Origin: Saccharolobus solfataricus P2 | GTDB lineage: Archaea > Thermoproteota > Thermoprotei_A > Sulfolobales > Sulfolobaceae | Length of the DNA: 64,000 nt | NCBI RefSeq assembly: GCF_000007005.1 | Contig: NC_002754.1 | Direction: 5' to 3' (one strand) | Shown: in pieces, positions 5,781-64,000 of the stretch | Layout: each line of letters starts with the position of its first letter | Numbering within the stretch: the first letter of the stretch is position 1 | Translations under genes and position numbers: made by a program | The notes under the pieces: generated by a model | Database searches by the model: none | What the model saw: the letters and a program-made list of their open reading frames with translations, nothing else | What the model was told of the DNA's origin: nothing

Positions 5781-6120
5781 CTTTGCTTCCTCCTTTCTTT
5801 TGTTTAGTTCCAGCATCTCTATCTAATAAATATTTTGGCTCAACTTTCTCTAATATTTCACGGGATTTATAAATATGTAATTTCACGTTACTTATGCCAG
5901 CTCCATAGCTTGTAGATATCTTTCTTACCACTACTAAGTTTTCTTGGGAACCCAAAGCTTGAATTATTGCCTTTATTATATCTTTCCTGGATGGGGTTCC
6001 GCTCCCCATATGATAAACTTTTAATGAGATTTCACGCCTACCTATGACAGAATTTTGCATATCCCTTTCTATAATCCCTTCAGCCTTATCTGAGATCTTC
6101 ACTTTAGCTTGAGACTCCAT
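5758..6120 (-). CDS. rps24e: 30S ribosomal protein S24e (eS24)
   Basis: [18 protein letters not shown] and [21 protein letters not shown] motifs. Confidence 0.95.
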
Positions 6121-6186
6121 TCTATTTCACCATTTTTAAAAATACGTATCAATTTAAGGTTTACTGTTTTAAACGTTATCGCTTTA

Positions 6187-14882: not shown

Positions 14883-14955
14883 AGCCGGGTAGTCTAGTGG
14901 TCAAGGATCCAGGGCTTTGGCCCCTGGGACCAGGGTTCGAATCCCTGCCCGGCTA
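14883..14955 (+). tRNA. tRNA-Gln(UUG), intronless, CCA not fully encoded
   Basis: Acceptor stem AGCCGGG/CCCGGCT (A1-U72), anticodon arm CAGGG-CT TTG GC-CCCTG, T-loop GGTTCGAATCC. Confidence 0.97.
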
Positions 14956-15196
14956 CCTCTCGGCTAATTTAGTTTTGTTCTTCTTTACCTTTTTGAATAT
15001 AAAATTTATATTGATTGAAAGGTCTTTTTACCTATATTAGACTAGTTTAATGTAATTTAGTAATATTACGAAGGTAACAGAAAAACCATAATATACTAGC
15101 TTTTACTAACGAGAGTTAAGATTAACTTAAGTAATGTTGAGAGGTCGTTTACGAGAGGAAAAAAATAAATACCTTGCGTTATCATTATTAAACAGT

Positions 15197-15276
<80 letters not shown>

Positions 15277-15344: not shown

Positions 15345-15398
15345 TTATGATGAGCCTCGTAGTTAATGAAAGGTGAATGAAGGTCTTGAGTGCTGAAT
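15345..15398 (+). ncRNA. Box C/D guide sRNA; predicted targets tRNA-Val(UAC) U34 and tRNA-Leu(CAA) C34
   Basis: C ATGATGA 15347-53; guide GCCTCGTAGTTA; D' ATGA 15366-69; C' GTGAATGA 15373-80; guide AGGTCTTGAGTG; D CTGA 15393-96. Intergenic. Confidence 0.85.
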
Positions 15399-29654: not shown

Positions 29655-30546
29655 CTGATATATTTATAATCTTTTTTACAACATCTAATGGATCTCTGCC
29701 AAAAACATAAGTGTTGGCCTCAATACCAGTACCGCCCAAATGTATTACCACATCTGTACCTTCATCAAATACTGCAGCTATTGTTTCGGCTATTCTTTCA
29801 TTGCCTAGGTCGTTCTGAGGACCTACTTTCTTAAATTTATAGCCAATTTCCTTCAATATCATTTCCACTTTCTCATCATACTTGATATTCATAACTGACC
29901 TCACAGCGGGATGATTTTTCATCACTGATAATAGTACCTTAGCTAAATGCTTGCTTCCTCCCCACATTGGTTTAGAAGCAGGTGTTGGTAGGTTTCTAAT
30001 TTTAGTTATTCTCCCTGGAATTGCAAGCACATCTTCTTCCCTCTTAGCGTTGGCTTTTGCAAAGGCTAAATTGCTTAGAACTTCTGGGATTAATTCCGCT
30101 ACAGACTCGTTTTGAAGCATTGATAGTGCAAGTTCCATCATTTCCTCTTCATTCTCCTTGTACAAACTTTTACAAATGTCGCAATCAACAGGAATTTCAC
30201 TATCAATCATTTTGTGGTATTTACAGAATTTTAGCCTACTTAAATTGGAAAGGAAAAACACACTGATATATTGCATTACTTGTTTAGGGTCACCATTTAT
30301 TAGTAATTGCGTAAGTTTATCTAGAAAATCGTCTATTTCTTCACGTGTTAATCCCAAATTCTGTAATCTTTTAATGTACGAATTTTCGTCTTCATCTAAG
30401 TATTGTTTCACTGCTGGTTGGCTAACTCCTAATAGATTAGCAATTCTCGTTTGACTCATATGTAGTTCCCTAAGTCTTTTAGCCTCTAATACCCTAATTG
30501 ATGTTATGAATATGTCATCAAATATTGATAGTGGTGATTTTAGCAC
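29626..30546 (-). CDS. HTH + ThiN-domain protein (ThiR-like thiamine regulator)
   Basis: [22 protein letters not shown], then a ThiN-like domain (LIPEV.SN, IPGRI, GGSKHLA, RSVMNIKY). Confidence 0.8.
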   Translation of the reverse strand: MLKSPLSIFDDIFITSIRVLEAKRLRELHMSQTRIANLLGVSQPAVKQYLDEDENSYIKRLQNLGLTREEIDDFLDKLTQLLINGDPKQVMQYISVFFLSNLSRLKFCKYHKMIDSEIPVDCDICKSLYKENEEEMMELALSMLQNESVAELIPEVLSNLAFAKANAKREEDVLAIPGRITKIRNLPTPASKPMWGGSKHLAKVLLSVMKNHPAVRSVMNIKYDEKVEMILKEIGYKFKKVGPQNDLGNERIAETIAAVFDEGTDVVIHLGGTGIEANTYVFGRDPLDVVKKIINISVKYKEIFSP

Positions 30547-62450: not shown

Positions 62451-62654
62451 ATGAAGGACAAGTATTCTGTTGTAACATGGCTATTGATACTAGTTCCTTT
62501 AACGGTATTCATCATAATAACAATATGGGTTATTGATTTGCTATTTTTAACTCCGCAGTGGAGGCAGGCAGTTCCAGCAGTTATAGGATTTGCAGTAGCA
62601 TTTTTAGGATTAGGAGTGTTTATAAGAGGCAAATTTGGAAAATTTGTATTTTAA
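62451..62654 (+). CDS. Small two-TM membrane protein
   Basis: 67 aa; TPQWRQAVPA loop between the two TM helices. Confidence 0.7.
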   Translation: MKDKYSVVTWLLILVPLTVFIIITIWVIDLLFLTPQWRQAVPAVIGFAVAFLGLGVFIRGKFGKFVF

Positions 62655-62666
62655 TTTTGCCAAAGG

Positions 62667-62721
62667 TATCATTACTTAAGACTTTCATCATTTTTCAGAC
62701 GCTGGCGAATCAATCATCTAA
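62667..62721 (-). ncRNA. Box C/D guide sRNA (minus strand); predicted target tRNA-Leu(UAA) U34
   Basis: Minus strand: degenerate C (TAGATGA/ATGATTGA); guide TTCGCCAGCGT; D' CTGA (62695-98); AAAA; C' TGATGA (62685-90); guide AAGTCTTAAGTA; D ATGA (62669-72). Confidence 0.7.
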
Positions 62722-62782
62722 CCTAAAATTATAGACAGAAAAATTTAAATCTTATTAGGGCTACCCTAATAATAGTGAGAAA

Positions 62783-63706
62783 ATGATAAGCATATCCACA
62801 CTACTAAATCCACCGGAAGGATTAACCATTTCAGAAATTCTTCTAATCTCAGTAATATTAGGTATGCTACATGGTGCAACTCCTGATGAACATACATGGC
62901 CAATAACGTTCAGCTATGCAATAGGTAAATATAGTTCAAAGGGAGGAATGAAAGCTGGATTTTTATTTTCCTTAGGTTTTACTATTCAAAGAGCATTTTT
63001 AACCACAATAGGTTTTATAGGTCTAGCAGCAATCTATGAAAAATACAATTTGGATGGTCCAGTATATACCATTGTCGGTATCGTTATGGCTATTGCAGGC
63101 TCTTATATCCTAAAAGGAAGATATTTGCATCTACCAATAGACGTTCTATTTAAAAGCAAATATCATAACACAAAAACTACTGGAGCAGAATTGCACGACG
63201 TGCCTTTAAAGATGACTATAGTTCATGGTCTAATTGCTGGTTTTGGTTTTGGAGCTTATGCTAGTATAATAACGTTTGTTTTAGCGCCTCAACTACCCTC
63301 AATAGTTTACGCACCATTACCTGGATTAATGTTTGGAATAGGGACAATGATTATGCAAATAATCTTTGGGGCTATATTTGGCAATATATTACGAGCAAAG
63401 AAGTTAACTGAGGAAAAAATATCATACGTTGCAAGGAAAACCGCGGGAAGAACGCTTTATTATGGTGGCTTAGTATTTACTATAGTAGGTTTGCTCATAA
63501 TAGGGTTCCCCATTATTGATAATTTTGCAATATCGACTGGAAATCCAATACCTAATCTTGATGCTATAGATATAGGATTTCTATTAGTGATCAGCGTTGT
63601 TGGTATCATAGGTATAAGTAGTATAATACTAGGAATTAAAGAGGCTACTAGGTTATCTGGTACAAACCAGAAACCGGGTAGCTTATCTGGATACAAAAAG
63701 TCTTAA
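62783..63706 (+). CDS. NiCoT/UreH-like multi-TM protein
   Basis: GMLHGATPDEHTW and VHGLIAGFGFG motifs. Confidence 0.55.
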   Translation: MISISTLLNPPEGLTISEILLISVILGMLHGATPDEHTWPITFSYAIGKYSSKGGMKAGFLFSLGFTIQRAFLTTIGFIGLAAIYEKYNLDGPVYTIVGIVMAIAGSYILKGRYLHLPIDVLFKSKYHNTKTTGAELHDVPLKMTIVHGLIAGFGFGAYASIITFVLAPQLPSIVYAPLPGLMFGIGTMIMQIIFGAIFGNILRAKKLTEEKISYVARKTAGRTLYYGGLVFTIVGLLIIGFPIIDNFAISTGNPIPNLDAIDIGFLLVISVVGIIGISSIILGIKEATRLSGTNQKPGSLSGYKKS

Positions 63707-63744
63707 GTTAAAACGTTTTTAAGATCGAAAGGTATTTTAGTTTT

Positions 63745-64000
63745 ATGTATAGTGATTTCTTCAACTCCATAGCTTTTAAATGGCAAGCGGAATGGGAGAA
63801 AAGTAAAGTATTCGAAACAAATATGGACTACTCTAAGCCTAAGTTTTTCATAACGGTTCCTTTTCCTTATACAAATAGTCCAATGCATGTAGGTCATGGA
63901 AGGACTTATATTACTGCAGATATTTACGCTAGATATTTAAGGATGAAGGGTTATAACGTATTATTCCCATTTGCTTTCCAATTTACGGGTACACCTGTTT
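63745..64000 (+). CDS. leuS: Leucyl-tRNA synthetase, 3'-truncated by window edge
   Basis: [47 protein letters not shown] (HIGH motif). Confidence 0.95.

Follow-up and report, generated by a model that had tools for sequence, protein, structure and literature searches.

The minus strand of positions 62667..62721 in the DNA analyzed here (the window, 64,000 nucleotides of Saccharolobus solfataricus P2) is confirmed, on sequence grounds, as encoding a guide RNA of the known archaeal C/D box family that had not been assigned before. We consider it likely that this is a functional box C/D sRNA with a TATA box of its own, which directs two methylations on tRNA-Leu(UAA). This interpretation is based on how the gene is built, how it is conserved, and how its two guides match the tRNA gene we retrieved, all of which can be read directly from the DNA. 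It makes two specific and directly checkable predictions, Um34 and Um44 of tRNA-Leu(UAA), and gives a model archaeon a well-supported tRNA-targeting guide RNA with a target on one tRNA assigned to both of its guides.

Anatomy and conservation of the guide RNA gene

The RNA is read from 62721 to 62667 as uuag-AUGAUUG-AUUCGCCAGCGU-CUGA-aaa-AUGAUGA-AAGUCUUAAGUA-AUGA-ua, and it is ~55 nt long, with approximate ends, and conserved in six genomes. All of its elements lie on the minus strand. The C box is the variant AUGAUUG (62711..62717), which keeps G3A4 intact and has U rather than G at position 6. It is followed by the 12-nt D' guide AUUCGCCAGCGU (62699..62710), the canonical D' box CUGA (62695..62698), invariant in the six genomes, the 3-nt spacer AAA (62692-62694) and the canonical C' box AUGAUGA (62685..62691). 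The 12-nt D guide AAGUCUUAAGUA (62673..62684) then leads to the D box variant AUGA (62669..62672), which also keeps G3A4, has A rather than C at position 1, and is invariant in the six genomes. Two guides of 12 nt and a total of ~55 nt agree with the dimensions of the family, in which guides are ~12 nt and whole RNAs 50-60 nt long. The self-structure of the sRNA is not significant (z = 0.58), and this lack of a stable fold is expected of a guide RNA.

In the standard C/D kink-turn, position 6 of the C box pairs with position 1 of the D box. The terminal boxes of the RNA deviate from the consensus RUGAUGA and CUGA at these two positions (U for G at C-box position 6, A for C at D-box position 1), and because the two pair together, the changes replace G6:C1 by U6:A1. 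AUGAUUG and AUGA still contain the two GA dinucleotides and the U.U position, and the U6:A1 variant is fixed in 6/6 genomes with the tandem G.A pairs and the U.U position unchanged, so that the terminal boxes retain what a kink-turn requires. Across the six genomes AUGAUU of the C box is invariant and its position 7 is G, U or A. The internal motif consists of CUGA, AAA and AUGAUGA, its boxes conserved, with the C' box varying as (A/G)UGA(U/C)GA, and its spacer variable. An earlier sequence-only reading of this locus had described canonical internal and degenerate terminal boxes; the terminal boxes do deviate, but they are not simply degenerate, given a compensatory U:A for G:C and GA dinucleotides that are kept. 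Off-consensus C/D boxes carrying such a compensatory pair can escape box-based gene finders.

General models and box searches would not identify this gene by themselves. At gathering thresholds Rfam reports two tRNAs only in the window, and the generic C/D matches are below threshold (snoPyro_CD, 17.5 bits, E 0.18, against a gathering score of 45; sR5, 12.8 bits), a test limited by the fact that archaeal C/D families have little in common beyond their boxes. A scan for the box architecture allowing 3 mismatches returned 4 matches in the window versus 0.5 expected in shuffles, and for this reason box architecture alone is only suggestive. What makes the sRNA more than a chance arrangement is the combination of three results: six genomes carry it at this locus, its two guides match a single tRNA, and substitutions in the guides occur at non-pairing positions only.

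The gene is located in a 128-bp gap between two plus-strand frames, a 67-aa ORF (62451-62654) and a gene for an RcnA/UreH-like membrane protein (62783-63706), a gene type associated with nickel/cobalt efflux. The 307-aa product of the latter is identical in P1 (LT549890.1), CP033235.1 and CP050869.1. PriX is encoded upstream of the sRNA locus, and a 934-aa LeuRS starts at ~63745 on the strand opposite to the sRNA, in agreement with the earlier placement of the locus ~1 kb upstream of leuS. A TATA-like palindrome, ATTTAAAT (62743..62750, minus strand), is centered ~29 nt upstream of the C box and is kept as ATTTAAAT or AATTTAAAT across the genomes compared. From archaeal promoter geometry we infer that it is the promoter of the sRNA, and being palindromic it may also serve the divergent RcnA-like gene. 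Between this promoter and the start of the RcnA-like gene at 62783 lies another palindrome, TTAGGGTAGCCCTAA (62755..62769), which has the form TTAGGGT[A/T][A/G]CCCTAA in 6/6 genomes and is probably an operator for the RcnA-like gene, not part of the sRNA. Taken together, the palindrome and TATA box at 62743-62769 resemble an operator site beside a bidirectional promoter that the two genes share. A run of T directly follows the D box in S. shibatae and Sulfolobus sp. E5-1-F.

The six genomes compared are those of S. solfataricus strains, S. shibatae, Sulfolobus sp. E5-1-F, S. tengchongensis, a Saccharolobus MAG and Sulfolobus sp. A20. In all six the sRNA has this position, ahead of the RcnA-like gene and LeuRS, and two genomes of the E5-1-F type carry it. 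It is kept in Sulfolobus sp. A20 (L276), though the upstream neighbor there is an ABC transporter and not PriX. The block formed by the sRNA, the RcnA-like gene and LeuRS (62667-63745) is thus intact even where the upstream neighbor has changed, indicating that a tRNA-Leu guide RNA is persistently linked to the leucyl-tRNA synthetase gene, a linkage that may be coincidence. Identity of the sRNA between S. solfataricus and S. tengchongensis is ~87%, and the 3' flank diverges. All 19 of the guide positions predicted to pair are invariant in the six genomes, and D-guide nt 2-11 as a whole do not vary. Of the five guide positions that do not pair, four are variable (D nt 1, A/G; D nt 12, A/U/G; D' nt 1, A/G; D' nt 12, U/A). 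The probability that all 4 variable sites would fall among the 5 non-pairing positions by chance is P = 4.7e-4. The sequence-only reading, which had proposed a C/D sRNA here and regarded a guide that is not conserved as refuting it, is borne out on both points by the box read-out and this conservation. The membrane-protein gene of S. acidocaldarius and that of Sulfurisphaera tokodaii have another context and no sRNA copy beside them, and the GUCUUAAG guide is absent from the 61 C/D sRNAs sequenced in S. acidocaldarius.

Complementarity of both guides to tRNA-Leu(UAA)

ARAGORN, with introns allowed, finds no tRNA-Leu gene in the window or the neighboring loci, and the target was retrieved stepwise. 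Phage records, searched by BLAST for a generic tRNA-Leu of Crenarchaeota, first gave the attachment site of the fusellovirus SSV RH, which carries the 3' part of a Sulfolobus tRNA-Leu(GAG) and contains CGCUGGCGAA, the exact complement of the D' guide. A metagenome scan with the pattern CTTAAG...TGGCGAA...T-loop then gave many archaeal tRNA-Leu(UAA) genes, one of them on an S. islandicus-type contig beside rpl21e-rpoF-DUF655. Finally, the S. solfataricus orthologue of the DUF655 protein led to locus L273 and its tRNA-Leu(UAA). Several other leads were set aside: an ARAGORN call of "Leu(CAA)" in S. tengchongensis is an intron-containing tRNA-Met, pattern scans of viral contigs for crenarchaeal tRNA-Leu gave bacterial or chance matches only, or nothing, the supplementary tables of Wolff 2020 and Daume 2017 yielded no usable tRNA sequences, and a transposase, chosen as a multicopy entry point into the genome, has a single exact copy.

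The tRNA-Leu(UAA) gene of S. solfataricus P1 (L273 9215..9116; Rfam tRNA, 45.8 bits) is GCGGGGGUGCCCGAGCCUGGUCAAAGGGGGCGGACUUAAG[ACCCCCAAGUAAGAG]AUCCGCUGGCGAAGGCCUGCACGGGUUCAAAUCCCGUCCCCCGCA, where the inner brackets enclose a 15-nt intron after G37. The same intron position and length are found in the S. islandicus-type contig and in S. tengchongensis, and S. acidocaldarius is without the intron. In 4/4 genomes the gene is divergently upstream of an rpl21e-rpoF-DUF655-ksgA cluster (L273 9116-9215, L274 2115-2214, L169 3065-3164 and L275 2008-2091). The segments targeted by the guides do not differ between S. solfataricus, the S. islandicus-type contig and S. tengchongensis. In S. acidocaldarius the variable arm is UGGCGUAGG, with which the D' match falls to 8 bp, and this shorter match and the missing intron fit the absence of the sRNA there. 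A natural comparison is thereby available: on one side three Saccharolobus-clade tRNA-Leu(UAA) genes with intron and matching variable arm, and the guide in six genomes of the clade; on the other S. acidocaldarius, in which the intron is missing, the variable arm does not match, and the sequenced C/D sRNAs include no such guide. It could be used to test whether tRNA introns and modification by guide RNAs are associated, as has long been proposed.

Nucleotides 2-11 of the D' guide, UUCGCCAGCG (62700-62709), form 10 contiguous Watson-Crick pairs, 6 of them G:C, with C41-A50 of this tRNA (C41-G42-C43-U44-G-G-C-G-A-A), with a duplex energy of -19.6 kcal/mol. The N+5 base is the A at 62703, which faces U44, the first nucleotide past the anticodon stem. 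Apart from this target and the antisense of the gene itself, ~125 kb of S. solfataricus DNA contain no matching run of 9 nt or more. The other guide of the sRNA, for which the sequence-only reading could name no target, matches the same tRNA. The 10-mer is also part of the tRNA-Leu(GAG) segment in SSV RH (L150, NC_005360.1 3898-4096), where the attachment site lies inside the integrase gene, and the D' guide could accordingly also reach U44 of that isoacceptor.

On the mature tRNA, nt 3-11 of the D guide pair with U39..A31 (8 Watson-Crick pairs and one G.U, -10.0 kcal/mol), and with the pre-tRNA all 9 pairs are Watson-Crick (A31-G37, ACUUAAG, followed by AC of the intron; -11.6 kcal/mol). The A at 62677 is at N+5 and faces U34, so that the placement of the wobble base of tRNA-Leu(UAA) at N+5, proposed earlier from the window only, holds for the real S. 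solfataricus gene. The full 12-nt target implied by that proposal does not, as the duplex comprises 9 bp (A31-U39) and guide nt 1, 2 and 12 face C41, C40 and G30 unpaired. A complement scan with CTTAAGACTT plus a T-loop, in one genome per species, gave 20 matches and none in Sulfolobales, since the real tRNA has UCC, or the ACC of the intron, at that place. The D-guide duplex is short and AU-rich, 9 bp with about -10 to -11.6 kcal/mol at 37 C for an organism that grows near 80 C. Complement runs of 9-11 nt recur several times by chance in AT-rich DNA, and part of the match is trivial because its CUUAAG core is palindromic. The D-guide match carries weight because it lies 1 nt from the unique D' target, in the same tRNA, and puts N+5 exactly on the wobble base. 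Between them, the 10 D' pairs and 9 D base pairs correspond to the ~9-12 nt of complementarity to a stable RNA, with a sensible N+5, that is characteristic of such guides.

Other targets were considered and rejected. The complement of neither guide appears in the rRNA alignments of Dennis 2015 (S. acidocaldarius and others), in which alignment gaps could hide a match, and the D' guide does not fit positions 14-19 of the D-loop. A separate D-guide-like sequence, AAGTCTTAAGTT, spans the stop codon of the membrane-protein gene at window positions 63698-63709 (plus strand) as an 11/12 same-sense copy of the D guide. The minus strand there is an 11-nt complement of the D guide, found in S. shibatae too (L122 ~10918); this match may be due to chance, aided by the CTTAAG palindrome.

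Sister guide RNA and other C/D sRNAs

The window contains a second C/D sRNA, called the sister here, on the plus strand at 15347..15396, AUGAUGA-GCCUCGUAGUUA-AUGA-aagg-UGAAUGA-AGGUCUUGAGUG-CUGA. It lies ~70 nt downstream of tRNA-Gly(GCC) (15196-15273), with which it is possibly co-transcribed, and tRNA-Gln(UUG) is encoded nearby at 14883-14957. Its D guide, AGGTCTTGAGTG (15381-15392), differs from that of the candidate, AAGTCTTAAGTA, at exactly three positions (2, 8 and 12), of which position 8 is N+5, precisely as the sequence-only reading had described. In the sister the N+5 position corresponds to C34 of a CUCAAGA anticodon loop; we predict that its target is tRNA-Leu(CAA), and that its D' guide also aims at U44, within (A)AC-U44-ACGAGGC of that tRNA. 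The two RNAs have the same architecture, D guides that are 9/12 identical, dissimilar D' guides, and off-consensus boxes in opposite motifs: in the sister it is the internal D'/C' pair that is a variant of U:A type (AUGA with UGAAUGA), and the terminal boxes are canonical. An origin of the two genes by duplication is plausible.

A counterpart of the sister is Sac-sR108 of S. acidocaldarius, whose D guide AGGUCUUGAGUA has 11/12 bases in common with it. This RNA is represented by 2152 RNA-seq reads and is 2^4.48-fold enriched in L7Ae RIP-seq; Dennis et al. 2015 evaluated it for rRNA targets only. Nanoarchaeum NeqsR12 has AGGUCUUGAGCC as its D' guide. Sac-sR108 and the sister share the architecture of the candidate and nearly its D guide (AGGUCUUGAGU[A/G] versus AAGUCUUAAGUA). 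They differ from it in their D' guides, which are unrelated to that of the candidate. In Sac-sR108 the N+5 base is G, for C34 of the CAA anticodon, whereas the candidate has A, and its terminal boxes are canonical while the internal ones deviate, which is the reverse of the candidate.

The scan that recovered both Leu guides also found two more C/D-like arrangements in the window, at 6080-6132 and 29873-29924, both on the minus strand and with 3 mismatches each. Danan et al. 2012 reported 11 circular C/D RNAs from S. solfataricus, which do not include the 62667..62721 locus. One of these, sR133 (P2 442392-442417), was considered and probably does not correspond to the candidate. It fits a canonical C/D sRNA 7.7 kb downstream, outside the window (TGATGA-GTGGGGTCAGAA-CTGA-ACCC-TGATGA-ATTACCCTGCAA-CTGA, plus strand, L001 19814-19861, equal to L002 17594-17641), as P1 coordinates are ahead of those of P2 (by 19 kb at tRNA-Ser SSOt33); the latter sRNA is probably the published circular sR133. 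A weaker C/D candidate is present at L002 16347-16396.

Proposed mechanism, alternatives and known systems

In the mechanism we propose, the transcript would assemble with L7Ae, Nop5 and fibrillarin and direct ribose 2'-O-methylation at two sites of tRNA-Leu(UAA). The D' guide would form a GC-rich 10-bp duplex with C41-A50 that places U44 at N+5, and the D guide a 9-bp duplex over A31-U39 that places the wobble base U34 at N+5. The substrate may be the mature tRNA or the intron-containing pre-tRNA, on which all 9 D-guide positions would be Watson-Crick paired. The terminal kink-turn would be maintained by the intact tandem G.A pairs and by U:A in place of G6:C1. Since the U34 and U44 sites are 10 nt apart, they would be bound sequentially, not together.

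The alternative closest to this mechanism is a functional C/D sRNA that uses a single guide: the D' guide alone would methylate, at U44 of tRNA-Leu isoacceptors with CGCUGGCGAA, the D guide would be an orphan or an aid in holding or folding the pre-tRNA, and U34 would not be methylated by the sRNA. We regard this as unlikely. The D' duplex is indeed much the stronger (10 bp and -19.6 kcal/mol versus 9 AU-rich bp and -10 to -11.6 kcal/mol), its 10-mer occurs in Sulfolobus tRNA-Leu(GAG) at the SSV RH attachment site as well, and PMC7994747 describes the tRNA-targeting sRNAs of Pyrobaculum as mostly one-guide. However, an unused D guide would not be expected to keep nt 2-11 invariant in six genomes next to an nt 12 that takes three bases, to place the wobble base exactly at N+5, or to have a near-identical counterpart (11/12 bases) retained by S. 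acidocaldarius in Sac-sR108.

Two further explanations deny the RNA a function or deny that there is an RNA gene, and both appear very improbable to us. The locus could be a copy of the tRNA-Leu(CAA) guide gene that has lost its function and is decaying, its G-to-A changes and off-consensus terminal boxes reflecting AT-biased drift; all three bases by which its D guide departs from that of the sister are G-to-A changes, the terminal boxes are off consensus, and we found no expression data for the locus. Drift does not account for ~87% identity between S. solfataricus and S. tengchongensis beside a diverging 3' flank, for substitutions that spare every predicted pairing position, for box changes that are compensatory (U6:A1) and fixed in 6/6 genomes, or for a D' guide that is unrelated to that of the sister and yet a perfect 10-mer match to the same tRNA. 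Equally, the conserved block could serve regulation of the divergent RcnA-like gene at the DNA level, or be the 3' end of the convergent 67-aa ORF, as the intergenic gap of 128 bp and the adjoining conserved palindrome and palindromic TATA box might suggest. But the block is 60-115 bp upstream of the RcnA-like start codon, beyond both of these elements, its C/D'/C'/D spacing is exact, its two invariant 10-nt cores complement adjacent parts of one tRNA, and it persists in Sulfolobus sp. A20 with a different upstream neighbor.

The modifications predicted for the dual-guide sRNA have protein-catalyzed counterparts. TrmL forms Cm34 and cmnm5Um34 of tRNA-Leu in bacteria, and Trm7 forms Nm32 and Nm34 in eukaryotes; in yeast, Trm44 forms Um44 of tRNA-Ser, and class II tRNAs carry Um44. 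The chemical outcome and the tRNA positions, predicted ones in the case of the candidate, are the same, but these enzymes are stand-alone proteins that recognize tRNA shape, as opposed to RNA-guided fibrillarin, and the likeness is one of functional analogy only, not of family membership. RNA guides with related tasks are known from Haloferax volcanii, where a C/D RNA within the intron of pre-tRNA-Trp directs Cm34 and Um39, and sR-tMet directs Cm34 of pre-tRNA-Met. As may also hold for the candidate, the substrates of these guides are pre-tRNAs that still contain an intron; methylation proceeds sequentially at two nearby sites of one anticodon arm, and sR-tMet pairs across the exon-intron junction. 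The candidate differs in being a free-standing gene that would act in trans and not an intron, and in having its predicted second site, U44, outside the anticodon arm.

In Pyrococcus, C/D sRNAs target the wobble position of tRNA-Leu(CAA) and tRNA-Leu(UAA) (Clouet d'Orval et al. 2001, as cited in PMC7994747). As summarized there, they resemble the candidate in that the guide covers the anticodon loop, with nt 34 of the UUR-reading tRNA-Leu at N+5 and one sRNA per isoacceptor; they belong to a different phylum, and that summary reports no guide for U44. For tRNA-Leu(UAA) of P. furiosus, snoRNAdb predicts G47. Wobble guides are also known in Pyrobaculum, and dual guides on one tRNA for the tRNA-Trp intron (C34, U39) and S. 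acidocaldarius tRNA-Gln (U34, G18). A dual-guide sRNA of Sulfolobales, from a 2004 study cited in PMC7668247, has both guides on one tRNA, one of them at wobble U34, where Um34 was observed; the candidate differs from it in the tRNA and in the second site. With wobble guides for both tRNA-Leu isoacceptors in Pyrococcus and these other dual or wobble guides, the kind is already established. The analogy with TrmL, of which the sequence-only reading saw an RNA-guided equivalent here, is fair, but it is not new, given the Pyrococcus wobble guides mentioned in PMC7994747.

What appears to be unreported in the literature consulted is the gene itself, the U:A variant of the kink-turn, the second guide to U44, and the link with a lineage-specific intron. 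In the archaeal tRNA-modification papers searched we found no mention of Um44 and no modification map of Saccharolobus tRNA-Leu(UAA), and the S. acidocaldarius data are silent on this isoacceptor. A wider reading, which we offer tentatively and hold with rather less than even confidence, is that the sRNA provides RNA-guided Um44 in long-arm tRNA-Leu, as a counterpart of Trm44, acts on the intron-containing pre-tRNA-Leu(UAA), and that the Saccharolobus lineage gained the 15-nt intron, an A in place of U in the variable arm, and the guide. If true, this would link the gain of an intron to guide-RNA targeting.
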